Source: Penicillus capitatus (lineage: Eukaryota > Plantae > Chlorophyta). From it: DNA of 64,000 nt. Below the pieces are notes generated by a model. The model did not search any database. It saw only the letters and a program-made list of their open reading frames with translations, and was not told where the DNA came from. The stretch lies in assembly GCA_965649825.1 (NCBI GenBank), contig OZ287707.1, positions 364,292-428,291 of the forward strand, written 5' to 3'. Positions 41,537 through 61,617 of this stretch are shown here, in pieces (position 1 is the stretch's first letter; each line of letters starts with the position of its first letter). A program made the translations under genes and the position numbers.

Positions 41537-41589
41537 GATGCTTACGCGAAGATGTGGCTCAGCTTCCGTTTGTCTGACAGTGCTTTCGT

Positions 41590-41997
41590 ATGCTCGATGG
41601 TATAATCAACTTTACCCGCATGTCGGATTCAAATAACCCTCGCAACGACTACGGCTCAAACGGAGATACCTCGGACTTTACAGAAGCCGTTCTGGTTTAC
41701 ACCTGCTTTACGGCAGCTGTTATTTTACTTGTCTGCTGCATTTGCCGACTTCCTGCTTTTGTCTACTATATGAGACACCGAGGAGAGCGTTTACGAGAGT
41801 TCCGTGAAGGGAGAGCCACTCTTCAACAAGACCCCATCGAAATTAAACAAGAAATCGCCGCGGCTATTTTTCTGAACCCCACAGGAAGTGTGACGCTGGG
41901 AACCCTCGCTAAAGATAGCGACACGCAAATTCAGTTGTGTGAAAGAGGGGAAGCCATCTTGGAGAGTGGACAAGAGGGAGGAAGACCATCTGCCTAA
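41590..41997 (+). CDS. Small single-pass membrane protein, hypothetical
   Basis: 135-aa ORF with one hydrophobic stretch (AVLVYTCFTAAVILLVCCIC) followed by a basic segment. Confidence 0.6.
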   Translation: MLDGIINFTRMSDSNNPRNDYGSNGDTSDFTEAVLVYTCFTAAVILLVCCICRLPAFVYYMRHRGERLREFREGRATLQQDPIEIKQEIAAAIFLNPTGSVTLGTLAKDSDTQIQLCERGEAILESGQEGGRPSA

Positions 41998-42302
41998 TCC
42001 ACCCATCATGCACACATGACGTCTTTCGACGTCCATCACCGTTATCACCGGCATCTTGTTTTCGTAAGGACAATCAATGCCATCCATGATTATCTTAGCA
42101 GCAGCGTTTTGTTTCGATTTCGCTGCCATCGGCGGCTGAAGCCACTGTAAATTGATCGAAGTCATTAGCACGATGTAGCTTGCTGCTGATAGTAACCGAC
42201 AGTGGTTGTGAGGCACCGCGTGTTCTTTGTTAAAGTGCGTCGATTCACCGACGCCTCGCCGTGGATATACTAAGTGAATGTTATTGAGCGACGAAAAAGT
42301 CC

Positions 42303-45300
42303 ATGCGTCGCAAACCGGCGGCAAGTGAATGCCTCGGGTGTTCTGCCGCGTTATCGCGCGTGCCAACGATTTTTATCGTTTTCTTTCTCTGGGGAGCGCC
42401 TGCGGTACGAGGAACAGACTACGCATTGACGGTCACCACTGCCGAAGCACTGCACGAAGCATTTCTCAACAACAACGTGACGCTTATCTACCTTGGCCAA
42501 GACATCTCTCTCAGCAGAAACGCATGGGGCGAAGGGGCTGAAAATGCATCGGGGCACAGTATTACCGTTGAGCGCAATCTCACTCTGACGTCACATCCTT
42601 CTCTCAACGCACCGGCTGTGCTTTATCTCGACTATGTGCAACATGGTGTTTTGGCTGGAACGAATGTCTATCTGAGGATCAACGGTGTCGTCATGACCGG
42701 TGTCAGTCAGGACGCGAGGAATCTCTTCTTCGTGCCATTCTTTCAGTTTCAAAGCGGCGGTACCATCTACCTCGAGAACTCGCAGTTTCAAATGGCCATC
42801 GATCCGGAGAACCTGTGGCCACTCGATGCTTACCCAGCGAAGATGAACACCACAGCACGGCCAACGGGCTACGAACACTGGCCAGTCGAATCATACGTCA
42901 TCGACCAGAAGGATTGTGAACTGAACGCATTGCGAGAAACAAAGTGTGACGAAGGTGCTATCTGGGTTGCCTCTCTGTCAGCACGCCTCACCATCTTCGA
43001 TCAGCATGAAGATCCCATCGGAAAAGCGGCTTTCTTGGCAGAGAACGTGCTGATCGTGGCCGAGGCTGTTGGAGATGCAGAACCTGTTGAGCACAAAACC
43101 GCTGTCGTCTCGACAGCCATGCAATTCAAGAAGGCACTTCAGAATCCACTGATTACCGAGATTCAGATCGAGAAAGATATTCGACTCTCCAAGAGAGTGT
43201 TTTCTCCTTCGATTCGCACGCCCATCACTCGGAATCTGACCATTAAGTCCTCTCCTCGCCTACACCGACATGCTGTGATTGACCTTGACTACCTGCAAAG
43301 CGCCATTGTGGCCGGAGAAGATATCCACGTGACATTACAAGACCTAAATCTCACACGCGTTTCGAAAGACCCACGAAACTATGAGCTGGTGCCATTTTTC
43401 TCCCTGCTGCCAGGAGCAATGTATTTGTACAGAAATATCACCTCGGAGATGGCTCTATCTCCGGTGGAGTTTTATCCGCTGAAACAACTAGCATTCCAAT
43501 TGTATGGCGGCGATGTGCCTCCCAGCTATGGGAATATCAGCAACTCTGTCGAAGCCGTTTCGTCTAAATGGTGTGCCAGACATGGCCATATTCGCTGTCC
43601 GGATGGAGCACTGTACATCAAGCGTGGCATTCGAAGATTACGAGTTCTAGACGTGGCCAATCAAGATGTCCTTGGCGAAGGATTTGTGGATATACAGGAG
43701 AGTCTGATAAAAATCATCGACATCACAAAGAACGGTAGATATCTTTTGAGTGATGGATTGGTCACTCTTCTCAACCCTCTATTGTGCGACCTTGTAGATC
43801 TGAATACATTAACGCAGCCTTATGCAAATCCGAAAGAAACAGAGGAGAAGTCGCACGCAGGGGGAAAGAAAGCCAATCTTCAAGAAACGGATTCGGCATC
43901 CGAAGAAGAACACGAAAGAAAGAGTTTTGGATTTGTCGGCGGCTTCGATCCATGGATATTAATCTATGCCCTCATCGCCGCCGCCATGGTTTTGGGCGTC
44001 TGCCTCTTTGTCATGATCCATCGCCGAAGAAGAGACCAAAAAAGCATACAGAACAACCGACATCCTGTACGTGCCTCACATCTTCCTCTACCTGCAGATC
44101 CGGCCGTCCGTGTGATATGAACAGGTCAAAAGATCTGAGTCGTTTACAGCCGAAGACGACGGAAGGAATGCGCATCAGAAAATTGCGCAACAGCTGCTCG
44201 GCGACGTGAAGCTTGGGACACTGCTCGGATGCGGGAGCTTTGGCCGTGTCTACAAAGCCATGTGGTCGGGTGCTCAGGTTTGAAGACAGCGACCGCTGTT
44301 GGGTGGCATCCCTTGATCCCTGTTCGGATCTAGGTGGCTGTAAAGACGATACTGCATCAAGAAGATGCGGCAGAAGTTGAACAGGAGGCACAGTTCAGTA
44401 TCAGTTTACGTCATCCAAATGTCGTTCAGACGTTCCACTATGCCGTTCGTACAGCTGACATCTCTGCGCCGACGCCCAAGGGAGAAGACAAAGAATCGGC
44501 GGTGGTGAACATTGACTGCCAGGCAAGGTGTTCTCCAGCAGTTCCCATCGACAATGGCATGAATATCCCTTCGAGTTGGATGAAGACATCGAACGGGGGA
44601 GAGATGTTCAAAAACAATGTCGCCACAGGTTCAGGACAGAGCTCAGCTATCCGAACAGATAACCCCAGTCGTGACTTTACGGAAGAACGGTGGATGGAGA
44701 TGTGGTTGATTCAAGAGTACTGCAATCTAGGAAGCCTTGGCAAGCAAAATCATCTGAGGGTTAATGATCAGCCGTCTGCATGGGGTAGCAGATACCCCGG
44801 AATGCAGGCCATTATCGACACATGCAAGGATATTTCACGTGGAATGAAGTATCTTCATGACAACGGCATCGTACATGGAGATCTGAAATGCGATAACGTA
44901 CTTCTACAGAGCAGTCATGTAGAGCCTAAGGGATTCACAGCAAAAGTCGCCGACTTCGGTCCGTGATCATCGCCTTCCTTCTGTCGAAAGCCAGGCACCT
45001 GTGCATGTAGGATTGAGTCGGAAACTGGGTCCATCAACGCATCTGTCAACCAAGAGTTTTGGGACAATTACACACATGCCTCCCGAGCTTCTCCTGGAGG
45101 GTCATCTGTCGTCGAAGGTATTTTGATAGCGTTTGTTCTACGCATGGCGGCGCTGAGAGGGCTGTGCTTGGCTGTGTAGGTGGATGTCTACTCTTTTGGT
45201 GTCATCATGTGGGAGCTCGTCACGGGCAGGCAGCCATTTCGGGAGCTGAGATATGCAGAGGTCATGCGTGCCATCGTCGTTGATAATAAACGCCCGACCT

Positions 45301-45518
45301 TTGATCCGGATACGCAAGAAGAGTATGTCGTTTTGGCACAGCGCTGTTGGGATCGAGATCCTTCAAAACGGCCGTCCTTTGAGTCTGTTCTCATCGAGTT
45401 GGACAAAATGTGCGTCGATGCCGTCGAAGCCTCTTCCTTCGATAGCAGTGCTGGCTCATGGGCAGGAGAATCCGACGATGATGAATCTCCGGCAGGCAAT
45501 AAGAAATTTTCTACGTGA
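42303..45518 (+). CDS. Receptor-like TKL-group protein kinase with duplicated ectodomain
   Basis: Signal peptide; two homologous ectodomain repeats; TM WILIYALIAAAMVLGVCLFVMI; kinase motifs GCGSFGRVY, VAVKTI, HGDLKCDNVLL, DFG, THMPPE, DVYSFGVIMWE, RPSF. Confidence 0.9.
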
Positions 45519-47066
45519 ATCGGAGAACAGGGCATAACCATCTCTCCCTGTCCGAGGCGTCAGTGCTCGGCTGCAAGGAAACACATGTGCTTGGCAGGCA
45601 GCAGGCTGTTGGTTGGTTGGTATTAGTACATCGCAATGGCGCTTCTGATTTATGCTCCAGAACAAAGGATTTTACAAATAAGCATCTATATCGTCCATCC
45701 GTTTGAGAATTTCATTTCTGTGGCAGTTGTGCTGATCTGTTTGTGAACTGACCGCTCCACAATTCTTTTCAGGTCATTGACCTGCTAGCTAACGGAGACC
45801 GCACATCAATGATTGATCTGCCAATTGCCAGCCAATATTAACTCTTCAGTAGAGTGGCTACAGCTCAGACATGACCAAATAAATGATGTAAACCTTGTGG
45901 TTTCCTACCTTTTGACTCTCGTCAGCAACTACCTTTCGTGACAACTTCCCCCTCGTCATCATGCGAACTGTAGTAGTATTGGTGTGGAGGGTGAAGCATT
46001 GTGATGGTTTCACTGAGATGTACACATTTTAGGATCTGACGCCAAAAGGTATTGGCATTGGTGTCACCAACGCTGTAATGACCCTTTCTGCTTCTCTTTA
46101 GCAGCGTCACGTTGAGAACACCATCGCCTGGAAATGTCTGCTGTGACTCAAGTGGCGAGGCATACGGACGGGCATCCTTACTTATGGACCAGATGCTGTC
46201 AACTGCCTCGATTTCTTTGTTTGTACAATTCTTCGCATATAAAAGGCTCTGCTTCTCAAACGATCATCAGAAAACGCGGCTTCCATTTGACGCCGACCTA
46301 CGCTGTCCAGAATCGAAGGGACGAGGACGAAGCTCGCGGCGGATGCATTGAACAGTCTTGGTGTTCAGAGTCGGCGGCAGGCGAATGAAGAGGCCGACGT
46401 GTGACAAGTTCTGCCTCCACTTGTATGTCTCTGGCCGTCCACATCGAAGAGGATGCAGATATCGGACCATGGCTAAACCAGAATGCGTCCTTTGACGAAG
46501 CAGGCTGACGACGACCGTTACAGATGGAGATCATGGCGGCGCAGACTTCGGCAGTGCATAAGATGGTAATGTAGGTTTTGGTGGCAAACGATTGTACATA
46601 GAATTCAAGACATCTGCTGCGCTCAGTCTACTCACCGCCGCGCGAACGCGTTCGAGTCATCCGATTTCGTCGTCTTTGAGCGTCGCCCGTTTCCCATGCT
46701 TACGCATCCACTTCGAGAATCTCGGCTCGTCTCTTTCCGCGACGTCCTCAAATTCATGCCAATAACATACAACTTTATGCAACGATCTGTGCGCCTATCC
46801 ATCGCATAAATCGGACGATGGCGATGACGTGCTTCTGTGTTCACTTTCTGGCATTTGAATGAGGAGAACTAAGCGGATCGACAGCGACGGCAACGCAGGA
46901 GGCCTTCCATGGCTCTGCAATTGTCTAAAGCGTCTGTACACGCATGTGCGTCATACTACCAGCATTCAACGTCCTGCGCATTCGGTCGGTCGACGCTCTC
47001 CTTTTTAAAGCGATTCGCCATCGGATACAGAATTCCAAGCGACGCGATGTAAAGGCGTGCATGAGG

Positions 47067-48299
47067 TTAAGAGATAACGTCTTTCCACAGTTTAATCGTC
47101 GAGTCTTTCGACCCAGTCGCCACTGTCGCGACCTTCGCATGACCATGCGCACACAGCACAGGACCGTAATGACCATCTCCCTCGGCATGCCCTCCATTTC
47201 TGCCAGGAATACGCTGACAACACGTCTCCCCCGTTTCTGTACAGTTGCCATTATCGACGGACTTTTTCGACTTTCGAACACTCCAAATACATAACGCGTG
47301 ATCTTCAGATCCGCAAACAAGCCACGGACGGCCACCTTTCTGCGCAGCAATGGCCAGTGTCGGAATGAGGCAGAGAGACGCATTGGTATGACCGACATAT
47401 TCCATCATCACCTAAACACATCTGTCCTGCCGCTTCCGACGGCTCGTTCGATCTCTTACTGAATCTTCATTTCCAAGATACTTTCGAAGAGTGATGCGTC
47501 CATTGAGCGTTGCGATCAGTAAGAAGCGACCGTTGGGGGTGAACTGGACATTGGATATCGGTGCACAGTCGGTACTGACGATCGTCTTCGTCGCACGACC
47601 ATCTTGGACGTTCCAAACCCGACAGAGTCCATCGTACGATCCAGAGACGATAAACGAACCGTCCATGCTCCAGTCCACGCTCGTAATCGGATCACCATGT
47701 GCAGGAATTTCCCGAACCGACGTGCCCGAGCGCACATCCCACATGCGCATCGTCTCATCGAAGCTTCCCGATACCTATCCAAGCACATATCCCTATCATC
47801 GACACCGACGCCCTTCATCTGCTCAGGCCTCACCAACATATCCCCTCGAGTATTGCTCTTCACTGAAAAGACGTAGTTTGTGTGACCTGTCAAACGATGC
47901 AGGCATTTCTGCGATTCTGTGTCCCAGACGATGAGGGATTTGTCATCAGATGCCGTTGCAAAATGTGCCCCTCGTGCGCCCATCCAGCAGACGTCGTTCA
48001 GTCCGCCCTCGTGTTCCTGTGCAGCTTGTGCTGAAAACCGTCGTCAAGACAACGGCGGTCATTACCTTTCCCGTGAAAACGAGCTCTTTGGTTTCGTGTC
48101 TCCATATTCGCACCGTCTGATCTCCAGAAGAGCTCAGCAGCAAAGAACCGCGCGAGGGCTCGAATTTGACACTCGATACGGAAGCGTTGTGGCCTTCGAG
48201 CGTACGCAGTAGCTGGAAATGCGCTGGGTCTACATAACGGAAGCCAATTTGTCAGGCGTCGAATATCTTCAGATCACTCCTACCGTGCTGAAGACCCAT
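47067..48299 (-). CDS. WDR5: WD40-repeat protein, WDR5/SWD3-like
   Basis: TLEGHNASVSSVKF, ATASDDKSLIVWD, LTGHTNYVFSV, PAHGDPITSVDW, SGSYDGLCRVW, ISNVQFTPNGRFLL, VCGSEDH. Confidence 0.82.
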
Positions 48300-48445
48300 C
48301 GCGTCACTTCTGAGAAATGCCTGAAGAATCGTCGATGTGACGGGCTACTCTGTTTACATTGTAAGAGCACGTCGTGGTCGTGGTCGTCGGCGCTGTCGTG
48401 GTCGTTGCGGGATTCAACCTCCTTATAGTTATCGCCCAACAATGG

Positions 48446-49539
48446 TCACACAAATGCCTGGGGACTTGATGACGAGACGGCATCGTCCATCATCGGTCGT
48501 CTGTCCGATACGAGTCTTGGCGACAAAACCAAGTCCAGTAATCGCTGTCTCTCCGTTTCTGTGTGGAAAGGGAAAAACCACATCCATCTTGACTGACCAA
48601 GAACGTCGTGGAGATTTCTTTTGGGTCCTCTGTCGTAAGGCCATGGATCCACTCTCTGTTTCTCGTACATTTCAATACTGGTACAGTTTGATAGGATGAG
48701 CTTCACGTGCATTGCCAGGAAAGCGAAAAGGCTGACGGCAAATGCAGCATCCAGTACGAATGATAAACACAAAATCGTTGACCTACAGCACAATGAGAGG
48801 CAACTTCATCCCAGCTTCCCTCACACAAATCCTCACCCTTCGAGCTTTTCGTTTCTGAACTCGTTGATGAGTGAAGAGAGCAAGATGAAGACAGAGAAGA
48901 CGGATCCTATCCAGGTGTATACCAGGAACAGAATAAAGAATTTGTAGTTCAGCAGACCGACGCAGTTGACCACCCAAATGCAATAATGATCCATTTTCAG
49001 TATGCATCGTTGACTGACGCTGCAATGGTGGGCGCGTTGCGGCTTCCACACTCGGCATTTGTGGCAGTAGCGTGGCCGTTGTGGATCGGTCCGATCATAC
49101 AATGCATTGCCAAACTGCATCCATCTTTGCAATTCGACCTCTGCCATCTGACCATGGCTGCTCAAACGATTTCCACCAACAGCGGTAGGGCACTTACTGC
49201 GTCATCGACAAAGGGGTGCCAGTTTTCTGGAACGCTGCCAGCATCCGTTAGAACGGTGGCAAAGTAGGACCAAACAATCATAAACACCTACAGCCAGACA
49301 AGGTATTGACGCGACCCGTTGTGTAATCTATGTCACACAATGAGGGTATAGACTCCTGCTACGATGCCGGAGACCGAGGCTTTGAATTTGTCATCGACAG
49401 AGGACATATCTGGCCCGAGGGTGCGTACGACGACGCTGTAGTATGTTAGTCCCACGAGACCCAGCACCACAAGAACCATCAAATGCCCCAAGGCTCTGAG
49501 AAATTTGCAGAACCGAAAGACATTGAGCCAGGCAAACAT
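48446..49539 (-). CDS. DHHC-family protein S-acyltransferase (plant PAT13/14-like) with DHYC motif
   Basis: [46 protein letters not shown]; TSIE; PYDRG..NL..VLG..WMWFFP. Confidence 0.9.
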
Positions 49540-49578
49540 GCCGTTTTCGCAAGACGACGCGAATGATTGCTTCAGCCA

Positions 49579-50442
49579 ATGAGGCGTCGTACAACAAGAC
49601 TGGAGCTCGGCTCTGCCCTTGCCTTTGCCGATGCCGAGCTCGAGGCACTGTACCAAGAAACGGCACATCGCAGAAGCCTTTCCGCTACAGAAGCGGTACG
49701 GATTCTCGTGCTGTTCTCGGCGCTCTCGTTCCTGCTCCCAGTGACAAAGTTCTTTGGAATCGCCCCTCTTTTTATCGCGGGCTACATCGTCAACGTAAAA
49801 GAGTTCCGTTATGCAACCGGAGTGCGAAACGCCTTCAAGTGCATGACGCGTCTCGTCACAGCCTGGTTATGCCGTTCTGGTAGCGGTGGAGTCTCTGTGA
49901 TTGAGAATCTCTGGATATCTTCTGTGCTTCCTCTCTTCATTAATGCCCAGTTTTTTGTGCCTCTCTCTTTCAGATATGAAACTCTGGTCCAGCCCTTGGC
50001 AACACTGATCTGCAGTTCATGGATACTATCGATTGCACAGTGCGAGCAGGCTGTGCACCAAGTGCGTTTCATTTGGGAATGGATCGCGTTGTTTGGAACG
50101 GCTCCTTTGGGTGTTGCATTTCCTGTCAGTCCTGTGGACGTGGCGGCGGTTCACATGTTTCTTCATCTCATGTGTGGCAGCGTCCTCTCTTGTTTTGTGA
50201 CCTACGTTCACGAAACGTGTAACCGTGCAAAATTTTGGAACGACCAACGACCGCATGCGTTGCCGATGCCAGTCGTAGAGGCAACACAATCTGCTGCTCT
50301 TCAATGTGTGCATTTATGGCTTGGGATTTTTCTAGTTCTATGTTGGACGCTGCCCTGCCTTTCGTCTCTATTGACCATTGTCATTCCTTCTTCTCTTCAA
50401 GTCTCAAGCTCTGTGTGTATTTCTAACAGTATACCCCAGTAA
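49579..50442 (+). CDS. Multi-pass membrane protein, hypothetical, single exon
   Basis: ~287-aa ORF with several hydrophobic helices; N-terminal LAFADAELEALY. Confidence 0.65.
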   Translation: MRRRTTRLELGSALAFADAELEALYQETAHRRSLSATEAVRILVLFSALSFLLPVTKFFGIAPLFIAGYIVNVKEFRYATGVRNAFKCMTRLVTAWLCRSGSGGVSVIENLWISSVLPLFINAQFFVPLSFRYETLVQPLATLICSSWILSIAQCEQAVHQVRFIWEWIALFGTAPLGVAFPVSPVDVAAVHMFLHLMCGSVLSCFVTYVHETCNRAKFWNDQRPHALPMPVVEATQSAALQCVHLWLGIFLVLCWTLPCLSSLLTIVIPSSLQVSSSVCISNSIPQ

Positions 50443-50501
50443 GCATGATGGGTTGGTCATTTGGGTGAGATGTTTGTGTGATGTGTATGACTTACAAGAC
50501 T

Positions 50502-51379
50502 TCAAGTCATGGCGATTCTTTTCCTAATAAACACGGCTTGGATCCATTTTCTCTGCATCCTAATGCCTTGACGACGATTTTCTATGTCCCGTTCATAAAT
50601 CACTAGACGTTCACATTCAAAGTCCTCTGTAGAAAAGAGTGACTTTAGGAAATCTTCTGTGAAGTAATAACAACGCGTTCCATCTCCTCTCAGATAGAAA
50701 TTCTCGCCCAGTTTCTTCTTCCCTTGAGGCTTCTCTTCGAATCGCACCTGCGCCATGTCTCCCACCGCATAGTCGCGGAATAGCACACGTCCCACTCCAG
50801 GCTTTAACACAGATTTTAGGTTACGGATCACTTCCGGCATCTTTGACGGGGACAGAGCAGAGAGCACGAAGATCAGAAGACAGAAATCGAGTGCCGGTGC
50901 AGAGAGATGCTGTATCATGAATGGAGCGGACACGTCTAGCACGAACGGGTGAATCCGCTCGGGGCAGAATTCTGCGTGCTGCTTGAGAAGCTCGATGGCA
51001 CGAGATGAGAAATCGATTGCCCAGATCTGACAGCCTGGTAACACTTCGAGTAGCGGAAAGCAGCTGTTGCCGACACCACATCCGACCTAAAGGTACCCGA
51101 TACGAGAACACTCTTCTTGTCTGTATCGCAACGAACGACTTCCAAGATTGTGAGTGGATGACAAGAGAGAAGTTCTGGAAACTCTAGGTTCAGGTAGTGT
51201 CGGTCCTTGAAGAAATTCGCCCCATGCCGTCGATAGAATTTCTCCCAGTGCTTCTTGGCGTCCTTTTCGTACTGCTCTACAAGCGATACAACCTCCGAGA
51301 TCGTTTGCAGTGAGGAAAGTGACGGACGACCTGCGATAAAGGCCGACAGTTGTGTCGCCGCAGTGGGATAGAGCTCCAT
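50502..51379 (-). CDS. METTL6: tRNA N3-methylcytidine methyltransferase METTL6/METTL2/Trm140 family (intact copy)
   Basis: MELYPTAATQLSAFIA|EQYEKDAKKHWEKFY..FFKDRHYL, ILE|VGCGVGN, AIDFSSRAI, IFVLSAL, LFRDYAVGD, YLRGDGTRCYYF, RKWIQAVF. Confidence 0.92.
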
Positions 51380-51476
51380 GATCTGAAGTAATGAAAGAAT
51401 GGGACATTTTCTCGCAGAAGATGAACGAGTTGTCGCTCGAAAGGCTGACAGCGCAGCTCCAGGCGACACAAGAGAA
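50878..51476 (+). repeat. Direct repeat, left copy (~600 bp; METTL6 5' half plus UFL1 start)
   Basis: Collinear with 55429-56024 from agacagaaatcgag to cacaagagaa; scattered substitutions and one 3-bp indel. Confidence 0.95.
51391..51476 (+). pseudogene. UFL1: Truncated 5' stub of UFL1
   Basis: MKEWDIFSQKMNELSLERLTAQLQATQE matches the start of the full copy at 55939-56024; unrelated sequence follows. Confidence 0.85.
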
Positions 51477-51835
51477 CCAATCGTTAAACGCGAGTGAAGC
51501 AAGGACTTTGTCAACGTCTAATCATCTTGCGCAACCACCGGGAGCGGTTGATCGTCGGGATAACCACCACAGAGCGCTGACCATCGGTCGCGACGGGTAA
51601 CGACGTTCAGACCAATCTCTCGATAACTGTAGGGCCGTGGTTAGCGAATGTGACTTGAAGTTCGCAGCTGTTAGACCTAGAGATTAGCGGAACCTTAACC
51701 ATTGAGGGTATTTAAAGGTCGACATTCCTTCTAAAAAACTCGTGTTCGTATCTTGAACATCCGATTGCGTTCCTGTCGTTTCTCTGCACGAAGACTCGAC
51801 TTGATTGCGAACCTATATTACAACGATCTCCAACA

Positions 51836-52336
51836 GCAGTTAATGACAATCTGCGAAATAGTGAGTCCCCAATGGTGTAGCGGACAGCGCACTCGACTGT
51901 GTCGAGAGGGTCAGGTTCGACTCCTGACGGGGACACGGAGGGTTACGTCATTCGCTCCCGTGGCAGCGCGTGCCTGAGGGTGACGTAATCCCCGCCGGCG
52001 CCGGCTAGGTCCTCCACTTCCACCCCGCAACCGTTGTCGCGTACCCGTCGCACATGTGTCTGTGATACTCTGCAAATCTGATAGACGGTTAAGAGACATT
52101 TCAGACACAACGTACATCACGCGCTGTACATCGGCGCAATACAGCCGCGTCCGACGCGCCGCGGATTCGTCGCACTGCCGCGACGGATAAATGACGCGCC
52201 GCGTCCGACGCAACAGTATTGCGCAGATGTACGTGAATGCGCAATACTGTCGCGGCAGTGCGTCGTGACGGAATAGGCGCGACTGCCGCGAAGGCAATAC
52301 CATCGTGGCAGCGCGCCAGAACGCGCAGATACCAAT
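51836..52336 (+). repeat. Inverted repeat arm L (501 bp)
   Basis: Reverse complement of 54565-55065; only four differences found by eye, all in the outer ~55 bp. Confidence 0.97.
51865..51935 (+). tRNA. tRNA-like element (pseudo-tRNA / Pol III internal promoter), isotype undetermined
   Basis: Acceptor GTCCCC/GGGGAC, A box TGGTGTAGCGG, D stem GTGT/GCGC, anticodon stem CTCGA/TCGAG with a 5-nt loop CTGTG, perfect T arm TCAGG-TTCGACT-CCTGA (B box GGTTCGACTCC). Confidence 0.8.
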
Positions 52337-52356
52337 ATGGCTAGTATTTGGGGTTT
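51865..52356 (+). ncRNA. Putative Pol III transcript (~490 nt), tRNA-headed structured RNA, copy L
   Basis: Begins with A/B boxes; no run of four or more T until 52353-52356; body rich in nested inverted repeats. Transcription is inferred. Confidence 0.55.
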
Positions 52357-52415
52357 TCTTTGCTTGTTTTCTTTGTCAAAAAGAAAACAAACGAACAAGA
52401 TCTCCATACACTTAG
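52341..52415 (+). promoter_or_regulatory. AU-rich hairpin containing T runs immediately 5' of ORF-L start
   Basis: Core stem ttgttttcttt (52363-52373) / aaagaaaacaa (52380-52390) with imperfect extension; ATG at 52419. Confidence 0.6.
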
Positions 52416-52418
52416 AAA

Positions 52419-52853
52419 ATGCAACCATTAACAATGACGGCAGCAAGAGCACAGATGGGGGCGGCCAACTTCGACCGGGGGGTTATCATGCCGGTGCTGG
52501 CCAGGATGGTGGAACGTGTGGCGAGGATCAACGGGGATGTTCGCCTGCATGGTTTGTGGATTCCGCCGGTGAATGGAAGGGGGCAGTTAAGACACGCGGT
52601 TTACATGGCAGTCTGTGATTTCTATGCCATCGGCAACCGCGCTGGGTTTGTCACGTGGCGTGTTGTAATAAACCGTGTACGTGGGCGATTAATTTTTCAT
52701 GGCGTTATGCAGCAAGGCAATGTGGACCAGATGAATAGACTTCTGTGGGCATTCTACTCTTTCTTTATGGCGGTGAGAACGCAAGCGGACATTAAGACCT
52801 ACGGAGAAACCGCGGTATTAACTTTTGTGGATGCGTTGTATACATTGCCTTAA
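52419..52853 (+). CDS. Novel 144-aa mostly helical protein (ORF-L), paralog of ORF-R
   Basis: Intronless ORF with A at -3; 49/136 ungapped identities with reconstructed ORF-R plus many conservative changes, indicating real coding constraint. Confidence 0.8.
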   Translation: MQPLTMTAARAQMGAANFDRGVIMPVLARMVERVARINGDVRLHGLWIPPVNGRGQLRHAVYMAVCDFYAIGNRAGFVTWRVVINRVRGRLIFHGVMQQGNVDQMNRLLWAFYSFFMAVRTQADIKTYGETAVLTFVDALYTLP

Positions 52854-52879
52854 ATCCAATTGTGAAAGTGTCGTGTTAT

Positions 52880-52939
52880 CGCCGAAACGCGCTAACGACG
52901 AAGGCGTATCGTTTAACAAAGACTGTTGTAACATTCACG
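52880..52939 (+). repeat. ~60-bp motif, copy 1 (3' of ORF-L)
   Basis: cgccgaaacgcgc..acgac..gcgtatcgtt..agactgtt..acat.cacg recurs at 53650-53709. Confidence 0.8.
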
Positions 52940-53355
52940 AGTTCAAATTTTTTCGCGTCAGACGTAAACGAATGTCACATCAACGCGTCTCCGTGGCAGC
53001 TGCACGAAGGTGGACAGCTGTCCACTGACAGTAAGGTCGCGGTTTGGTTGTTCAAGTTACGAGAAACGCGCGCTATCGCGTCAACAAGAAAACGTCCACC
53101 ACGTCGACGCCGAACGCGCACAGACTGCTCCCGGAGTTAAATAACGTAACGCTTGGTGTGACGTGCTGTCATAGAGAGAGCCGCTCGCAGTGAGAAACAG
53201 GTTTTCGTGCGGACAAGATACACAAATGCTTTCGACGAGAACCTTCACGTCCAGCGCCATGATGTTGAACTAAATAATACGCGTCCCGCATACCCACTTA
53301 TTAAGCAATCGGAGAAACGAGAAGGGAAACCTGGTCATAAATTCTTCTGCAATCC

Positions 53356-53598
53356 TCACCAATCTTTCCGGCAGAGTGACCTCTGCTGAATGTCCATGAC
53401 GAATAGGAACTTCTTTCGGCCATCCAACTCACAGCGTCCGCCTGTCAAGCCGGGATGATAAAACGGATGCGAATCTGAATATGGCGTACTTTCCTTACGG
53501 ACGAGACGGGCGAAATGCAAGATCCGGTTTTCATCGATTCCTGGCAACCGTTGTTCTGATCTTCCACATTTGGAGAAGGGAGCTTTGGATGACATCAT
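53356..53598 (-). CDS. Short ORF / probable gene fragment in cassette interior
   Basis: 80-codon ORF (ENRILHFARLVRKE..HPFYHPG..KKFLFVMDIQQ); no family recognised. Confidence 0.25.
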   Translation of the reverse strand: MMSSKAPFSKCGRSEQRLPGIDENRILHFARLVRKESTPYSDSHPFYHPGLTGGRCELDGRKKFLFVMDIQQRSLCRKDW

Positions 53599-53649
53599 TG
53601 TAATTGTGGTCCGTAGCTGTCGCGGCTTAGCAGCTCCGCCGTGTAGAGG

Positions 53650-53709
53650 CGCCGAAACGCGCAAGACGACAAACGCGTATCGTTACAGAGACTGTTTTTG
53701 ACATCCACG
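53650..53709 (+). repeat. ~60-bp motif, copy 2
   Basis: Diverged direct repeat of 52880-52939 sharing an exact 13-mer cgccgaaacgcgc. Confidence 0.8.
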
Positions 53710-54032
53710 GAAAGGAGTTTGTGCGGCGGAGAACGGACACACAAGTCACGTCTTAGCCTCTCCATGGTGTCACGCTCTCGCATGAACGTCACACCATCTG
53801 CCTCGTTTTCGAAGAGTTCTGTCTTTCAAGAGGCGCTTGGACAAGCTTTGTGTCTTTTCAAGGGCGTCTTTCTCTGGTTCTGAGCGCCGAATGGCTCACC
53901 TGGTCTGTGAAGTCGTGTCACATCAGCACTGTAGAAGAGGGAATGTTTGCTTTATTTACGATTTCAGTTTTAAGGTTTTTCTGCGTATGCGTTCGTTTGT
54001 TCACCGACAGCGCGACAGATGCGAAGAATGGA

Positions 54033-54484
54033 TTAATCAAATTGTTGTCTTATTCCGTACAAAGAATCCACAAAGTTCGTCGCCATTTGCTGTCCATTGC
54101 GCCGAACGTCCGTTTTCGTTCTCAACGTTCGATACAAAAGGTAAAACGCCCATGCAAGTCGCCTCCATTGGGTTTCATTGTTCGGTGTCATTACATCCCA
54201 GTGGATCAACCTCGCATGTAGACGTTCCAAAATATCACCCCACGTTGAAACCCCGGCCACATTGCCAATCGCAGGAATTCGCCAACCACGCGACCTATGT
54301 TCTCCCGCAGCGGATTCCTCTCCAGAGCCGGTGGAACCCTTGGATTGATCAAACTCGCCCAGCCGTCCACGTTCCCCGAGTACGCCACCATCATACCAAC
54401 CACCGGCTCCATAATCCCCCAGTTGAACCTCGTCGCCCTCAATTCCGCCAGAGCATTGTCGAAGTTGACTGCTGGATTTGCCAT
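54033..54484 (-). pseudogene. ORF-R, ~150-aa paralog of ORF-L with a 1-nt deletion frameshift
   Basis: MANPAVNF...VVGEF in one frame continues as AIGNVAGVSTW...FVDSLYGIRQQFD* in another; the break at 54273-54274 (GAA TTC CT GCG ATT) aligns with ORF-L DFYAIGN. Confidence 0.8.
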
Positions 54485-54485
54485 T

Positions 54486-54564
54486 GTTCCAAGTATTTAA
54501 AGCTTTGTTTGCTTCTTTTTTTCTAACAAAAAACCTAGGAAGCGAAACTTTAAATACTTGGAAC
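54486..54564 (-). promoter_or_regulatory. Perfect 17-bp hairpin abutting ORF-R start codon
   Basis: gttccaagtatttaaag (54486-54502) is the exact reverse complement of ctttaaatacttggaac (54548-54564); an inner stem and a T6 run lie inside; ATG at 54484. Confidence 0.8.
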
Positions 54565-55036
54565 ATTGGTATCTGCGCGTTCTGGCGCGCTGCCACGATG
54601 GTATTGCCTTCGCGGCAGTCGCGCCTATTCCGTCACGACGCACTGCCGCGACAGTATTGCGCATTCACGTACATCTGCGCAATACTGTTGCGTCGGACGC
54701 GGCGCGTCATTTATCCGTCGCGGCAGTGCGACGAATCCGCGGCGCGTCGGACGCGGCTGTATTGCGCCGATGTACAGCGCGTGATGTACGTTGTGTCTGA
54801 AATGTCTCTTAACCGTCTATCAGATTTGCAGAGTATCACAGACACATGTGCGACGGGTACGCGACAACGGTTGCGGGGTGGAAGTGGAGGACCTAGCCGG
54901 CGCCGGCGGGGATTACGTCACCCTCAGGCACGCGCTGCCACGGGAGCGAATGACGTAACCCTCCGTGTCCCCGTCAGGAGTCGAACCTGACCCTCTCGAC
55001 ACAGTCGAGTGTGCTGTCCGCTACACCATTGGGGAC
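54528..55036 (-). ncRNA. Putative Pol III transcript (~510 nt), copy R
   Basis: Same sequence as copy L; the first T run on the - strand is T6 at 54533-54528. Confidence 0.55.
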
Positions 55037-55065
55037 TCGCTATTTCGCAGATCGTCATCAACTGC
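54565..55065 (-). repeat. Inverted repeat arm R (501 bp)
   Basis: Reverse complement of 51836-52336. Confidence 0.97.
54966..55036 (-). tRNA. tRNA-like element, copy R
   Basis: Same cloverleaf as copy L; D-stem 3' strand is GCAC, giving U-A where copy L has U-G. Confidence 0.8.
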
Positions 55066-55428
55066 ACGTCAAACGGTCTCACAGAAATAGCAGGCCCAGC
55101 TTATTTGCGGTGAATTCAGGGAGAGGTGCAATCACTGTGTGCGCGTTCATCGTGGAAGTGGACATAATCCAGCAACTGAGGAGGAGCGGATTCATAGCTC
55201 AAAGCTGGCGTGTGCATTGATGAGTGGCTCTGGGGTCTCACAAGGAATTAGTACAATCACGCGATCATCCTTTCTGAAGAGAGGATTTCTTACCACGATC
55301 TGGACAGCATCGTACTGCTCTGGCATTAAGTGTGTCTTTTCTAACAGATCGTCCTCCAGTGTCAATGTGACATAGGACCTAGATCAGACAACGAGCTGGC
55401 AGACAGCGCGGGGGTGGGATGTCTTACG
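55066..55428 (-). pseudogene. Intron-containing fragment of an unidentified host-type gene
   Basis: On -: a 49-nt intron gtaaga...gatctag, exon SYVTLTLEDDLLEKTHLMPEQYDAVQIV, then a second gtaaga donor. Confidence 0.4.
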
Positions 55429-55927
55429 AGACAGAAATCGAGTGCCGGTGCAGAGAGATGCTGTATCATGGGGGCGGACACGTCTAGCACGATCGGGTGA
55501 ATTCGCTCGGGGCAGAATTCTGCGTGCTGCTTGAGAAGCTCGATGGCACGAGATGAGAAATCGATTGCCCAGATCTGACAGCCTGGTAACACTTCGAGTA
55601 GCGGAAAGCAGCTGTTGCCGACACCACATCCGACCTAAAGGTACCCGATACGAGAACACTCTTCTTGTCTGTATCGCAACGAACGACTTCCAAGATTGTG
55701 AGTGGATGATCAGAGAGAAGTTCTGGAAACTCTCGGTGCAGATAGTGCCGGTCCTTGAAAGAATTCACACCATGACGTCGATAGAATTCTTCCCAGAGCT
55801 TTTGGGTGTCTTTTTCGTACTGCTCTACAAGCGATACAACCTCCGAGATCGTTTGCAGAGAAGAAAGCGACGAACGACCTGCGATGACGGGCGACAGTTT
55901 TGTCGCCGCTATGGGATAAAGCTCCGT
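55429..55927 (-). pseudogene. METTL6: Truncated METTL6 duplicate
   Basis: Start codon mutated ATG>ACG (55927); homology stops after ..ALDFCL at 55429; several non-synonymous changes, including in the intact copy's KHWEKFY (here KLWEEFY). Confidence 0.88.
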
Positions 55928-56024
55928 GATCTGACGTAATGAAAGAATGGGACATTTTCTCGCGGAAGATGAACGAGTTGTCGCTCGAAGAGCTGACAGC
56001 ACAGCTCCAGGCGGCACAAGAGAA
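55429..56024 (+). repeat. Direct repeat, right copy (~600 bp)
   Basis: Collinear with 50878-51476. Confidence 0.95.
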
Positions 56025-58811
56025 AAAAGCCGTGGTCGGATTGCATTGTCCCTATCTTTATCTCTTGACGGTAACGGGCGATACCCAGGTGCGGCTCTCT
56101 GAGAGGAATGTGGTGGAGTTGGTGAACAAACTGAAAGAACTGGGTGTCATTGATGCTGGGCTTCTGCACACAGCTAATGGAAAAGAATACCTGACGCGTG
56201 AGCAACTCAGAAAAGAGATAATGGAAACCTTGACGCAAGCCGGCGGCCGTACATCATTGGTGATGTCTCAGCCATTCCCTGCGCGATGTTTAGATGCAAT
56301 GTTTTGCAGTCTGAACTGTGTGATACATTGAATGTCGATCTGAGTCACTGTGAGAGAGAAAGCAGAGCATTGGTGGAGCAATCAAAAGGCGAGATTCTGT
56401 CGATGCAAGAAGAACTCATCACACAAGACTACTTGCGTGCCGTTGTTGTCGAAGTGAAGGAACGGCTCGAAACCACGGGAGTTCTCCGAATCGGTGCGAT
56501 GATCATCACGCTTTGTGGTTGGTGAGGTTTCTGAGAATGTTGGTGATAGGTGACTTGGCGATTCAGTATGGACTGAATCATGACCTGTTGCTCTCTGTCG
56601 TCTCTTTGCACTTGGGATCATTGTTAAAGGGGGAGCTGGTGAACAGCATCCTTTTTACTCCGGCACATATGGACCGGCTCAAGGCGCAGCTAAGAGGGGC
56701 GCTGCGCGGGACAACAACGCCGATTGCTCTGGCTGCTTTGATCAAACAAATACAGTTGGATGATAGCGGAACGTCTGATATTATCCAGAGACTCATTCGA
56801 GATTTAATACATCAAGATGACATCCAGGTCGAAGAGTGTATGGATCGATTCAGGAATTGAGTGGGGATTTAGGGAGAGCTGAGGAGCAACAACCAATGGA
56901 TACCGACAGTGCACACAAAGGCGCAGAGATCGGCCGTTGTGGCTCTCTTTCATCAAAACGGCTGGGTCTCGCAAAACGCTGTCCGCAGAGTGGCCTCCGA
57001 TGAGAATGCGTTTCTTCAAGAGCAGTTTTCTGAGCATTGTGTGTTGGATACTGTCGTGGTCTCGTCCAGTTTCGTTGAAAACATGGATGCCGAGATCGAA
57101 GAGCACTTGGAACAAGCATCATGGTGTGACATCTGTTCCTTGTTGCCCATGGAATTCGGCGAGGAAGATGGCCGACAGCTGCTTCTGAAATGCGACTCTC
57201 TCAAACGTCGATCAGATCTTCAGAGTATCACAGACACATGTGTGATGCTCACATCTTTCGTCAAAGTTCTGTCTGTACTGTGTTGCTAAAGCATGGTTGC
57301 GATCTGCACGGTGATGTGACAGGAGTGTGAACAAAGAGTGCAGGAATGGTCTGTGCAGCTGGCGAAAGAATCGCTGATTCAATCCAAACAGAAGGGCAAA
57401 GTGGACGAAGCTTCTGCTATACAACAAGCAAAGCCTAAAGATGAAGACGAGGAGGAAGATGGACCTGGTGGAAAGGGAAAAAAGAAGAATCGCGGAAAGG
57501 GCAAGGCAAAAGGCAAACAGACAGGTCTTTGCTCCCATCTCCTGGTTTTGCCCAAAGAGAGCATCATGCATTTCTTGAGCAGGAAGTTCGAAGGTGGCAG
57601 GGAAGCCAAATAAAGAGACGGCTACGACGACATTGTGCCCTGGAAAGGAGTCTTTAGCAGACGTACTGAATCAATGGTTTCCTCAGATGGAAGAAGTTGT
57701 TCATTTGGCCGAGACTCTCTCAGAAATGCTCGTTTCAACAGCAGTGGATGCTTACAACTTGACCATCGAAGTCATTCTTTCAGCTTTGCCAGCACTCTGT
57801 CTGCAATGCCTTGCAGGAGGCCACGAAACTGACAGATAAGAGGCGACAAGAGTTGAAAGAAAAGGCGCTGAAGCATCTCGAAGAGACCCTGAACAAAATC
57901 TGGCTATTTTCCAAAGGCATCGACAGTTTGCAGAGCGAGCTGGATGAGGCCAACGTCGTTCTGCTGAAGAAACACGCTGTTAAGACGACAGGTCGTTTCC
58001 TGTGAGTTTATGAAGAATGACATTAGGACAGATACTAGACAGGTTGCGACGCTGTGGACTGGCTGCTGCGTTACTTTCAACTTCAGGAACCCGGAGGCGA
58101 TGAGGACGTTCCGGATGAGATGATTCCCATTCCAACCAATCATCGATCGGCAATCTTGGAACGCCTCCCGAAGGATGTTTCCCCAATGGCTCGTGCAGCT
58201 GTTCAGAGCACAAAACAGGACGAGCCTGAAGTAAAGCATGTCACACAGGGGGTAACACGCAAGCAGGTTGATGACATAGGCGCTGTTGGAAGCCCTGGAC
58301 AGCGGCATAGAGTCTTGCAGTATTCGATTTCCAAAGCGCGATAAGAAAGCAGAGAAACAGAAGGTCCTTGAATTCGAGACGATATGGAAAGAGAGGCTGA
58401 AAATAGAAGACAATCCAGCAACCGTCTTGGCCATACTCTTGCCGGTCTTGATTGCCAAGGTCTGTGTGCGAAATCTGTGTGCAATCTGCATCTCTGTTGT
58501 TATGGCAGATGCGTGGTATTCTCGTCAGCCTTCCAGGCAGAGCCATGCCATCGCTGATCGCATTGCTGAAGCCTGCAATGAAAGATGCAGACTACGAGAT
58601 CTTGGAAGCTTTTCATAAGGCCGTTGTCGAAGATCTGAAACAGAAGTCCACTTCAGGTGCGACGCATTAAATCCAGTTTGCACATCAAAAATCGTCTCCT
58701 GCATCTGTAGACAAGACAGAAGAAAGTCCACCGCCGCCAGCGCAGAATGTACTAGTCGATTTGATGCGCAAAGCCAAAGATCTGATAGAGGAAGAACAGC
58801 ATTCGGTTTAG
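55969..58811 (+). CDS. UFL1: E3 UFM1-protein ligase 1, multi-exon (alternative in-frame ATG at 55939)
   Basis: RLSERNVVELVNKL, LLHTANGKEYLT..L.KEI, GGRTSL, LNVDLSH.E, RLKAQLRGALRG.TTP, KGKKKNRGKGK, LLKPAM. Confidence 0.93.
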
Positions 58812-58819
58812 ATGCCATG

Positions 58820-59468
58820 TTAAAGCATAAAGACTCCCAGGATGAGGCCGAGGATGAGGGCTGTGATACCCAGGACCGTCTAAACACAAAGCCTTATCGT
58901 TCTTGTCCTGCGTCTCTCTGTACTAGCTTACCATTTCGGGTGGTGAATGTGTGACTAGCAAAACACAGTCTCTGCAAGTTAATCTCCCATCGCGGTTCAT
59001 CTACACAGCCAATAAACATACGAAACACTTCTACCACGCCGGTGCATCACATCGAAACATTTTCGACAATCTTGCCGGCATTGTTGCCATCCATAGAAAT
59101 AGATGAAAGCCTGGAAAACACCATCTGGTCGACAAAAATGAGATAGGATTGGAAATAGACAGCGATGATGAGGGCCAAGACGATGAGTGTCAGGATCAAG
59201 GCGATCATTCCTTTCTAATGCACATAACGCATTAACCCGTCATTCTTGAAGCAACAGACATGTACAGTGAAACCGATTCCCAGGAGGAATCCGATGACCA
59301 AGACTGCAAAGAAGAAGAGTGTATAGCGGCAGCACACTTGGCTGGTGGTTGGAGGTTGCGCTGTTTCCCCCTCTGCAAGTATGCACAGACATATGTATGT
59401 CCTCAGATGCGTCATCTGGAGGTGTTGCGCTCGCCTGCGACGAGGGGAGCTTCTGTGTCTTCTGGCAT
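58820..59468 (-). CDS. Small multi-pass membrane protein, hypothetical, multi-exon
   Basis: MPEDTEAPLV..., CCRYTLFFFAVLVIGFLLGIGF, IALILTLIVLALIIAVYF, VLGITALILGLILGVFML*; exon joins tentative. Confidence 0.45.
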
Positions 59469-59523
59469 CGTTTTGTCGATGGGCGCAATGAAGATGTCCC
59501 ATCGCGTTGTGGTCTGCAAATCG

Positions 59524-61561
59524 ATGTGTAAGTTCGCATGGTATCTCACGCTGTTCCTGGCGACAATAGCTACTGCAGAGAATGCGGGGCGCCGACATGA
59601 ACAAACAATAAACGACGTCGTATAGCTTCTCTTCTATCTCTTCTGCCCTGCATTCTCGAGTCCTTATCTTCAGAACATCACCGTCGTAGAAGATTCACCC
59701 GAAACGCACATCCAGACAGCGGATGCCGAGGCAGAAGTGCCACCCAAGAACATCAGCGGCTACTACAAAGGCATAAGCACTGCTGCCTGTGACACCCGCG
59801 GGTTTTGAGCTTTGGACCTATAGGGACCTGGGAAAGTCAAGGAATTGACATTCGCTTTCGTCATGTATTGCTTCTCGATCAGGAGAAGGGAGATGTGATC
59901 ATGGACCTCAGAGTCGGCCAACGCATATCCTACGGAGTCCATACTGTCCATGTCCGCTCTTGACATGACACGAGGCCCGTTCTATGTCGTGCTGTTCAGG
60001 GAGATGTGTTGCTGAAGAATGGTCTGCACTTGACAGACGATGACATTCGTTTCACATTCGAGGGTGTCTACGTGCCAGAAGTGGATTTTGTGACGGGTGT
60101 GCTGTCTTCCAAGAAAGCGATTGCTATTCGAATCAGCGAACAAGAGATCTTGCAGAACAGTCCATTCTATCGGTACGGACAGATCTGCTCGGCGATGTCC
60201 TTCGTGCGCGAGCGATGGATGGGACAGGGAAGCTTTGAGGAGGGAGGCAAAGAAATGGATTAAAGACCCGCCGCCGTTGCTGAAGTTTGGTTTGCCTCCT
60301 GAAAAGCAAATTCAGTTGAAACACCGTTGTCAGTTTCACCTCGATCTCAAACTCTCGCCCATGAATACCACAGCAGAAGCAGATGATCTCCTCTCGTCTG
60401 CGCCCATTGCTTTCCCAGTCGACGGTTACCATGTGCGACATCCGTTCGATCACCTTAGGTGTCGACGGGTGCTTGTGCGTTCCTCTAGATCGCCGGCAAG
60501 ATCACGAGTCCAAACTGCAATGTCAGTCTCTCGGTGAATGCAACTTCTTTTCATTTGGAGAAGTACTACACGAAGGCAGTGCATTACACATTGGTCATTG
60601 CTATTCTGACATTCCTCCAGATTCTGTTGCTCATTAAACAGATTGAAGGTACATCGACGCCAGCAACGTCGATGCGCGTGTCCATGATTGGCATCAGTCA
60701 GCAGACCGTTATGGATGCCTATCTCTGTCTGCTGCATCTGACAGCAGGAATCGTTGTGGAGCCTCTCTTCAATGCCTTTGCCATGGTATCCTTCTTCGAG
60801 TTCGTTCTGTTTGCCATCTTCGAGATGCGATACATGCTCTTAATCTGGCGAGCGCAGAGGGGACAGTCGGACGACGTCTGGGATACCCGAAGAGAGCTCT
60901 CTATTCTCTATACCCGTTTCTATGGCGTCCTGCTGGCTGGAATCTTAGGAGCCTTCAAACTACAGCAGTATATGCGTGGCTTTGTCTTCGTGTTCTATTC
61001 GTTTTGGATTCCTCAAGTGGTGCATTGTATAAGGACAGATGCGAGACAGCCACTGAAACCGTTCTTCATCATAGGCATGTCGATCACCCGGTACGTTACC
61101 GATTTTCAAATGCCATCTCGCTTGACTGTCGTCTCAACAGATTGGCCTTGCCTCTCTACTTCTACGGCTGCCCATCCAATCTCCTCGGTGTCCGACCCAG
61201 TCCATTACTGTGCATGTGTCTGGTGCTATATGTGGCCATACAGGGCGCCGTTTTGATGGTGCAGTACTACTATGGACCCCATTGCTTTCTGCCAAAGCGT
61301 TTTCTGCCACACAAACATGACTACTTTCGCTCACTGGATCCAGATGAAGTGCGGGAAGTGCTGAGAAGGAATGGAGATCTGGAATCCAGCGAGGCAGGAG
61401 TGACGGAGTGTGTGATCTGTATGAACCCGGTTGAGATCGGACGACCAATGACGCGAATGGTGACGCCTTGCAATCACTTTTTCCATCCACAATGTTTACA
61501 GAGATGGATGGACGTCAAGATGGAATGTCCAACATGTCGACAAATATTACCCCCTCTGTAA
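59524..61561 (+). CDS. FLY1: Transmembrane RING-H2 E3 ligase, TUL1/Dsc1/FLY1-like
   Basis: Signal peptide; TM block (QTVMDAYLCLLHLT, FFEFVLFAIFEMRY, SFWIPQ, RLALPLYFYGCPSN); C-terminal CVICM..TPCNHFFHPQCLQRWMDVKMECPTCR. Confidence 0.9.
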
Positions 61562-61617
61562 AAACTCTATACTCTCTATGAAATCCTCTCTGTATCCGCC
61601 ACCACAACGGCAACGCC

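Follow-up and report, generated by a model that had tools for sequence, protein, structure and literature searches.

What is the 3,951 nt of DNA that separates two copies of the METTL6/UFL1 start region in a 64,000-nt stretch of the Penicillus capitatus genome (contig OZ287707.1; hereafter the window), and how did it come to be there? An earlier note on this DNA had taken it for a selfish or virus-like cassette of tRNA-headed RNA-plus-protein units. The window is also part of contig ctg340467_45x_l (894,450 bp; ENA ERZ25074695), where window position x lies at 767522 - x. We read about 140 kb of this genome, including the 64-kb window and four loci (L001, L002, L004 and L006, together ~75 kb) that hold seven other units of a small gene family represented in the insert. 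The same region was read in a relative (L007, 20 kb of a 1.06-Mb contig, ERZ26696514), reached through a METTL6-exon search (95%-identical protein, from another sample), and in a more distant relative (L008, Logan SRR20820735), the METTL6 of which is 63% identical. The closest named METTL6 homologue is that of the green alga Bryopsis (49% identity). We conclude, with moderate confidence, that the insert is a complex duplicative insertion, in which a tandem duplication was joined with patchwork templated filler from local paralogues and later altered by gene conversion, and that it is not a discrete mobile element.

The insert (51478-55428) lies between two copies of a 600-nt METTL6/UFL1 segment, which form a direct repeat (50878-51477 and 55429-56024) by repeat finding and BLAST, in agreement with the earlier note. 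METTL6 remains whole on the left and UFL1 on the right; the surplus pieces, 87 nt of UFL1 and the METTL6 5′ part, are decaying. Both sides are collinear with the reverse complement of L007 (window 40469-51476 with L007 1-10977, 87.4% identity; window 55429-64000 with L007 10377-18957, 85.1% identity), and the two alignments share one 601-nt L007 segment. Since they overlap on this single segment, the relative has the target once, without the insert. UFL1 and METTL6 are also adjacent in L008, which has downstream genes in common with the window. As both relatives are uninterrupted, the alignments show the head-to-head METTL6/UFL1 arrangement with a single 600-nt segment to be the ancestral state, and the insert to be derived. 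An empty site in relatives, which the earlier note had proposed to look for, is therefore present in both of them, and the arrangement is not an ancestral one kept in synteny. Over the 316 sites that were not homogenised later (51161-51477), the left and right repeats differ by 11.7%, the left repeat differs from L007 by 14.6% and the right repeat by 13.9%, which would fit a duplication that arose after, and not long after, the split from this relative.

The start codons of METTL6 (- strand) and UFL1 (+ strand) are only about a dozen bases apart, head to head, at 51377-51393 and 55925-55941, so the upstream region of each lies inside the other gene; this arrangement is kept in L007. The truncated METTL6 copy (55429-55940, - strand) has lost its opening start codon and differs at many positions that change amino acids; even so, it stays near-identical to the functional copy over about 280 nt, apparently through gene conversion.

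The insert is made up of one nearly full unit of the family, carrying the open reading frame (ORF) ORF-L, and one inverted, truncated unit, carrying ORF-R. Apart from ~270 nt in each arm, the traceable added DNA consists of pieces of the local family in both orientations, and ~300 nt at the left end are matchless. An exhaustive profile search of 1.84 billion cluster representatives returned seven members of the family; all of these, plus P0002, are on ctg340467 at ~682-890 kb. By tblastn on the fetched loci, nine copies were located (Table 1), three of them intact and all within ~208 kb of ctg340467. No relatives of the ORF family were found in IMG/VR or the JGI metagenomes.

The inverted arms (51836-52398 and 55065-54505) are 563 nt long and 95.7% identical by repeat finding and BLAST, and start 358 nt and 363 nt inside the insert ends. 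Their outermost part, the head segment (51836-52105), is an indel relative to the other family units: it is absent from all seven, and has no match in L001, L002, L004 or L006. Each arm has a 72-nt tRNA-like sequence (51865-51936, + strand; 54965-55036, - strand), which ARAGORN calls as Thr-TGT. None occurs elsewhere in the 64 kb, and ARAGORN finds no tRNA in L001, L002, L004, L006, L007 or L008. Its score in a focused search with the Rfam tRNA model, 26.7 bits, falls short of the gathering threshold of 29. The model fits the T-arm and acceptor stem well, but the D-arm and anticodon arm have degenerated and the anticodon loop has been shortened. At gathering level, no Rfam family was found anywhere in the window; weak matches to Rfam microRNA-like families represent generic hairpins. 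Other than the pair in the arms, no second head copy was present in the window, the ~140 kb of this genome, L007 or L008, and a 26-nt piece of the head gave no exact match in IMG/VR or the JGI metagenomes.

The inner end of the head segment (52047-52105, equivalent to 54796-54854 in the right arm) is a 59-nt copy of a UFL1 exon, inverted relative to UFL1, the source of which is 1.8 kb away and is kept at the orthologous place in L007. The indel ends in this exon fragment, and the head segment has neither a tail, whether A-rich or of simple repeats, nor a target duplication beside it. Judged from the sequences compared, the tRNA-like head is not part of the family module. Because it is absent from the other units and ends in a UFL1 exon fragment, head and body together form a patchwork with host filler in it; that both arms carry this patchwork is due to inverted duplication or gene conversion rather than to the design of an element family. 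Just past the tRNA-like sequence, both arms carry an inverted pair with ACGT cores, GGGTTACGTCA / TGACGTAATCC (51940-51991 in the left arm).

Several parts of the initial description were borne out, and others only in part. The structured body is real, in that a 498-nt stretch, beginning at the head and reaching the first T-run, folds more stably than shuffled sequences (z = -5.7), because the region is full of short local palindromes. AT-rich hairpins do lie directly 5′ of both ORFs. The tRNA-like head occurs in both arms, but only as a sequence below the Rfam threshold with a shortened anticodon loop. Two inward-facing copies of one unit had been described, which is accurate for the arms but not for the ORFs, since ORF-L and ORF-R share only ~43% amino-acid identity and can be aligned only in their C-terminal halves. 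Of the reported pair of 144- and 150-aa ORFs, the first is intact, but the second is not an intact 150-codon frame; it is spread over two frames by one frameshift. A motif believed to be common to the 3′ ends of the two units (52880-52939 and 53650-53709, 82% identical) turned out to be a direct repeat on the + strand that is not mirrored, with both copies on the ORF-L side. Finally, head and ORF, which had been read as one unit, are separable and adjacent only at the insert, which in spirit fulfils a condition that the earlier note had itself named as refuting its reading.

The junctions and the pattern of identity give some indication of the history of the insert. At the right junction, similarity to the donor runs 12 nt into the host repeat, up to 55440, and 9 of these 12 bases are common to host and donor. 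The insert ends (51478 and 55428) do not repeat each other in either orientation, and no short duplication borders the arms, not even one of 3 matching bases. Identity within the duplicated parts is mosaic. The arms match at 100% over 51891-52337 (447 nt) and less well towards either edge; between the host repeats, identity falls from 98.9% (50878-51160) to 88.3% (51161-51477); and, within the family, synonymous divergence (dS) between ORF-L and P0002 drops from 0.79 in the N-terminal to 0.12 in the C-terminal half, which adjoins a 92%-identical 3′ region. These patterns indicate repeated ectopic gene conversion.

This lineage has gained 3,951 nt and a second copy of the 600 nt, and because of that duplication METTL6 and UFL1 have each kept a full 5′ end. 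In the explanation that we favour, a single break-repair or replication event may have given a short tandem duplication. A series of template switches, to paralogues nearby and to DNA of the flanks, would then have filled its junction. This could have happened by end joining of over-extended recombination intermediates, or by copying of the type known as microhomology-mediated break-induced replication or fork stalling and template switching (MMBIR/FoSTeS). The ~270 nt of each arm that do not derive from the family are filler, comprising the degenerate tRNA-like sequence, a GC-rich stretch and the 59-nt UFL1 exon piece; the tRNA-like heads would be passengers. Gene conversion at a later time would account for the near-identity of 447 nt in the arms and of ~280 nt in the host repeats, against a divergence of ~12% elsewhere.

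Tandem duplications of ~0.1-10 kb and patchwork templated insertions are known to result from aborted repair, where polymerase theta joins the ends of abandoned recombination intermediates (PMC8654963), and complex insertions can arise by iterative template switches (PMC5120786). The locus resembles such tandem duplications with templated insertion in its 600-nt target duplication with foreign DNA at the junction, in filler drawn from nearby loci in both orientations together with a fragment of flanking DNA (the UFL1 exon), in the imperfect homeology at one junction, and in the lack of an element-encoded enzyme. It differs in the length of the filler (3.95 kb), most of which represents two members of a single local gene family, and in that the event is old, has been overprinted by gene conversion, and has its mechanism read from a single product. 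What looked like a new class of RNA-plus-protein element would thus become a well-documented natural case of complex duplicative insertion: two relatives show the exact empty site, the genes on both sides were spared by the 600-nt duplication, the filler can be traced to local paralogues and a neighbouring exon, and gene conversion followed.

A number of points weigh against this explanation. The mechanism is deduced from its product only, 3.95 kb is long for filler DNA, and no donor was found for the left 180 nt or for the tRNA-like piece; in all, ~180 nt per arm could be assigned to no source. The homeology is at one junction only and is imperfect (9/12). Selection on the ORF appears weak (in-frame ratio of nonsynonymous to synonymous substitution, dN/dS, of 0.62-0.71, compared with 0.7-1.6 for off-frame controls). 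The comparison is confined to ~140 kb of this genome and 20 kb of L007. The census of copies drew on an incomplete word index and on databases of predicted proteins, clustered at 50% identity, and may have missed copies elsewhere in the genome or in the relative. The word-indexed search (5.8-billion-cluster proteins) gave two family members and overlooked a 60%-identical paralogue on the same contig, which the exhaustive profile search found, and its negative results need caution accordingly. Recombination between the 600-nt repeats, with loss of the insert, would likewise produce an empty site. Such a loss seems unlikely as the source of the empty sites, because the outgroup L008 is also uninterrupted and the repeats are closer to each other (11.7%) than to the relative (14–15%).

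The insert has features that would be expected if the family unit, or the whole 3.95-kb piece, were a new non-autonomous mobile element with a long target duplication and an enzyme encoded elsewhere: the insertion is derived and clean, the empty site is exact, the duplication resembles that of a target site, the family is multi-copy, and there are long inverted arms as well as palindromes conserved in every unit. Terminal inverted repeat transposons, miniature inverted-repeat transposable elements and foldback elements likewise combine inverted arms, here of 563 nt, with internal palindromes and no enzyme coding capacity. However, the arms are internal (~360 nt from the ends), have no short target duplication and are the promoter-side sequences of a gene family, and the termini are not common to the copies. 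All copies occur within ~208 kb of a single contig, two of them as parts of larger segmental duplicates of NLR-type genes, and their ends differ; the insert ends are not mutual repeats; and the insert has taken in a piece of a host exon and the end of a gene from the neighbourhood. Domain searches of the insert ORFs found no transposase, reverse transcriptase, integrase, Rep or capsid domain, in keeping with the earlier note, and we regard a mobile element as unlikely. The selfish or virus-like cassette, as first proposed, is not upheld, given that the head is missing from the seven other units and contains a UFL1 fragment, that the copies are local with inconsistent ends, and that no viral or transposon match was obtained by sequence, profile or fold. 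Gene-fragment capture of the Helitron type was rejected, since a target duplication of 600 nt does not fit it and neither Rep nor helicase is present. Alternatively, the head by itself could be a tRNA-derived short interspersed element (SINE; Pol III head plus body), which inserted on the upstream side of a family gene before copying placed it in both arms, so that the structured RNA of the earlier note would be an ordinary SINE beside an ordinary gene. It has a tRNA-like 5′ sequence in which box A and box B can be recognised, and unrelated sequence behind this; its T-arm and acceptor stem are intact, it is an indel against the other units, and the first run of four Ts downstream of it falls in the hairpin region. 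A SINE would nevertheless be expected to recur, and this head is limited to a single locus in the sequences searched (~140 kb of this genome, the loci of the relatives, IMG/VR and the JGI metagenomes); it also scores below the Rfam tRNA threshold, lacks an A-rich or simple-repeat tail and a target duplication of its own, is not shared with the other units, and has a body that ends in 59 nt of host exon in place of a SINE tail. This origin is rather improbable.

The arrangement might instead be a functional, selected cassette, in which ORF-L would partner NLR-like genes of immune type, and the two inverted tRNA-like B-box elements on either side of it would act as chromatin boundaries between the METTL6 and UFL1 promoters. 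An intact ORF-L with host-like codon composition, the linkage of some family units to NLR-like genes, the canonical T-arm/B-box region kept by both heads and the identical arm core are all compatible with this, but the heads are absent from all other units, the identity of the arm core is equally well explained by gene conversion, and ORF-R is broken; we give the idea little credence. A more novel reading, in which the array, the start-codon hairpin and the orphan helical protein together make up a new self-amplifying or immune-linked unit, is also doubtful; palindromes would drive local duplication and exchange, the protein would act with or against NLR-like genes, and the insert would be a new copy with B-boxes as boundaries. 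An assembly artefact, either a chimeric join or a collapsed or expanded repeat, is very improbable. The contig does come from a metagenome assembly, and both the arms and the repeats have tracts of 100% identity. Set against this, divergence between the host repeats reaches 11.7% over 316 nt, both continue into unique flanks that are collinear with the relative, the truncated METTL6 copy is decaying independently, and the identical tracts (200–450 nt) are short compared with long reads, the contig name suggesting a 45x long-read assembly. The complex duplicative insertion remains the explanation that we favour.

Table 1. Features of the insert, its flanks, and the copies of the small-ORF family (window positions, unless a locus is given).
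Feature	Position	Strand	Description
Left target copy	50878..51477		Intact METTL6 (-) 5′ part, head-to-head start region, first 87 nt of UFL1 coding sequence (truncated extra copy)
Insert left end, outside arms	51478..51835		Mostly matchless; 51658-51716 resembles L004 10156-10213 (82%, inverted), upstream of a family unit
Left-arm head segment	51836..52105	+	Patchwork unique to insert: tRNA-like sequence, GC-rich stretch with small palindromes, UFL1 exon copy
Upstream array	52106..52340	+	GC-rich 16-mer GCGCAATACWGYCGCG repeats, both orientations, local palindromes
Hairpin, left	52340..52418	+	AT-rich, directly 5′ of ORF-L start codon; conserved in all family units
ORF-L	52419..52853	+	Intact, 144 codons; orphan family, predicted all-helical
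Spacer after ORF-L	52854..53030	+	Holds 52880-52939, extra direct copy of motif at 53650-53709
3′ region, ORF-L unit	53031..54017	+	92% to L001 10446-11423, behind P0002
ORF-R (P0007)	54033..54484	-	Diverged, one frameshift; own 3′ region lost just past stop codon
Hairpin, right unit	54481-54569	-	Extends past arm inner edge to ORF-R start codon
Right arm	54505..55065	-	Inverted copy of 51836-52398; array 54570-54795, UFL1 fragment 54796-54854, tRNA-like 54965-55036
Sequence outside right arm	55066..55298	-	Also upstream of other units: L002 9650-9733; L006 9222-9317 and 9807-9855
Insert right end	55299..55428	-	Last 16 nt of STAND/TPR gene plus 3′ flank; L001 9386-9528, 92%
Right target copy	55429..56024		Truncated, decayed METTL6 5′ part (-), start of intact UFL1 (+)
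Native UFL1 exon	57184..57245	+	Source of 59-nt fragment in both arms; conserved in relative L007
P0002	L001		Intact family copy
Second L001 copy	L001		One frameshift
Third L001 copy	L001		Truncated to N-terminal half
P0003	L002		Intact family copy
Second L002 copy	L002		Two frameshifts and one stop
L004 copy	L004		Several frame changes and internal insertion
L006 copy	L006		Rearranged N-terminal part

The three intact copies of the ORF are equal in length and free of indels despite ~24% nucleotide divergence, and their GC content by codon position (0.56–0.61, 0.42–0.44 and 0.56–0.58) matches that of host genes, which argues that the ORF is protein-coding. ORF-L is probably a working member of the family, as far as sequence can tell, and ORF-R is probably a pseudogene. 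No insert ORF gave a Pfam, PHROGs or PADLOC hit, or a sequence hit in the PDB. AlphaFold with seven sequences predicted a helical bundle (predicted local distance difference test, pLDDT, of 73.6 in one of five models), which gave nothing below E = 1 in Foldseek searches of the PDB and BFVD; a model built from two sequences was unusable (pLDDT 45). A non-standard genetic code was considered and dropped, as all three stop codons terminate long conserved ORFs.

The order of the common module is the tail of a STAND/TPR gene, upstream sequence, 16-mer array, AT-rich hairpin, ORF and a 3′ region of ~1 kb. The 16-mer GCGCAATACWGYCGCG matches only upstream of family ORFs; in the window there are six matches, all in the two arms, compared with 0.09 expected by chance. 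In some copies the array shows 75-nt periodic repeats, and array copy number is variable. The promoter of the family would probably lie in this array. Two tandem 75-nt repeats, 99% identical, occur in the array upstream of a broken copy (L002 17134-17283).

A long hairpin ending at or including the start codon was found in all eight units tested (z -3.4 to -15.6). RNAalifold analysis of the eight hairpins found only a 27-nt core conserved in sequence, and no formal covariation. With modest confidence, the hairpin may restrain translation, or may act at the DNA level as a hot spot of exchange. The most extreme example is in a broken copy (L004 10295-10400), where it is a near-perfect 106-nt palindrome (-61 kcal/mol, z = -15.6), the 3′ arm of which overwrites the first codons of the ORF; palindrome arm length varies between units. 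Beyond the ORF, the 3′ region is kept for 55, ~485, ~595 or 987 nt depending on the copy, and the 5′ ends vary too. Candidate ORFs in the 3′ region are not kept as open frames in the other copies.

Palindromic AT-rich repeats (PATRRs) are fragile, recombination-prone sites, with the human PATRRs as the classic case. Each family unit likewise has an AT-rich palindrome of ~80–106 nt, at which identity between paralogues shifts abruptly. In contrast to the human PATRRs, the palindrome here belongs to the conserved 5′ end of a gene, including the start codon, and no breakpoint of the insert lies within it.

The upstream neighbour of some units is an NLR-like gene for a STAND NTPase with TPR repeats (Pfam AAA_16, nSTAND3 and TPR_12). 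Two copies of this gene (L001 5912-9467 and L002 13349-16922) share 95.8% identity over 3.6 kb, and a unit follows directly behind each of them. They are ~110 kb apart on ctg340467, and the small-ORF units behind them are only ~77% identical; the flank has either been swapped or has diverged much faster than the gene. The other units (L001 1.5-3 kb, L006 and L004) have no adjacent NLR call. No motif common to the ORF and the upstream STAND/TPR genes was detected by tblastn, and a search through a WD40 neighbour for the syntenic NLR/small-ORF region of the relative returned the query alone.

The family shares with NLR-type clusters (STAND NTPase plus TPR), which carry rapidly evolving small genes linked to them and often undergo ectopic gene conversion, its local amplification, its many pseudogenes, the mosaic identity of its paralogues and, for some units, a position directly downstream of STAND/TPR genes. 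It differs in that the ORF is without a recognisable domain, and in that the insert is away from any NLR gene and has only the last ~140 nt of one. The link between the small ORF and the NLR-like genes would here be positional. With modest confidence, the family can be described as a set of fast-evolving, lineage-specific genes associated with NLR-like genes. An orphan small-gene family of this kind, with an unusual start-codon hairpin kept in every copy, may be of interest to students of immune-type gene clusters or of palindrome-driven rearrangement.

Elsewhere in the window, a 935-codon frame (17662-20469, + strand) encodes a NACHT/NB-ARC NTPase followed by HEAT repeats; it is NLR-like and differs from the STAND/TPR type. 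Three pairs of segmental duplicates, unrelated to the small-ORF unit, were seen in the loci read: L001 1-368 with L001 14724-15084 (93%), L001 14158-14678 with L002 7623-8144 (94%), and L001 1001-1223 with L001 8356-8579 (94%). Their scatter suggests that the neighbourhood of the family units is generally prone to rearrangement.

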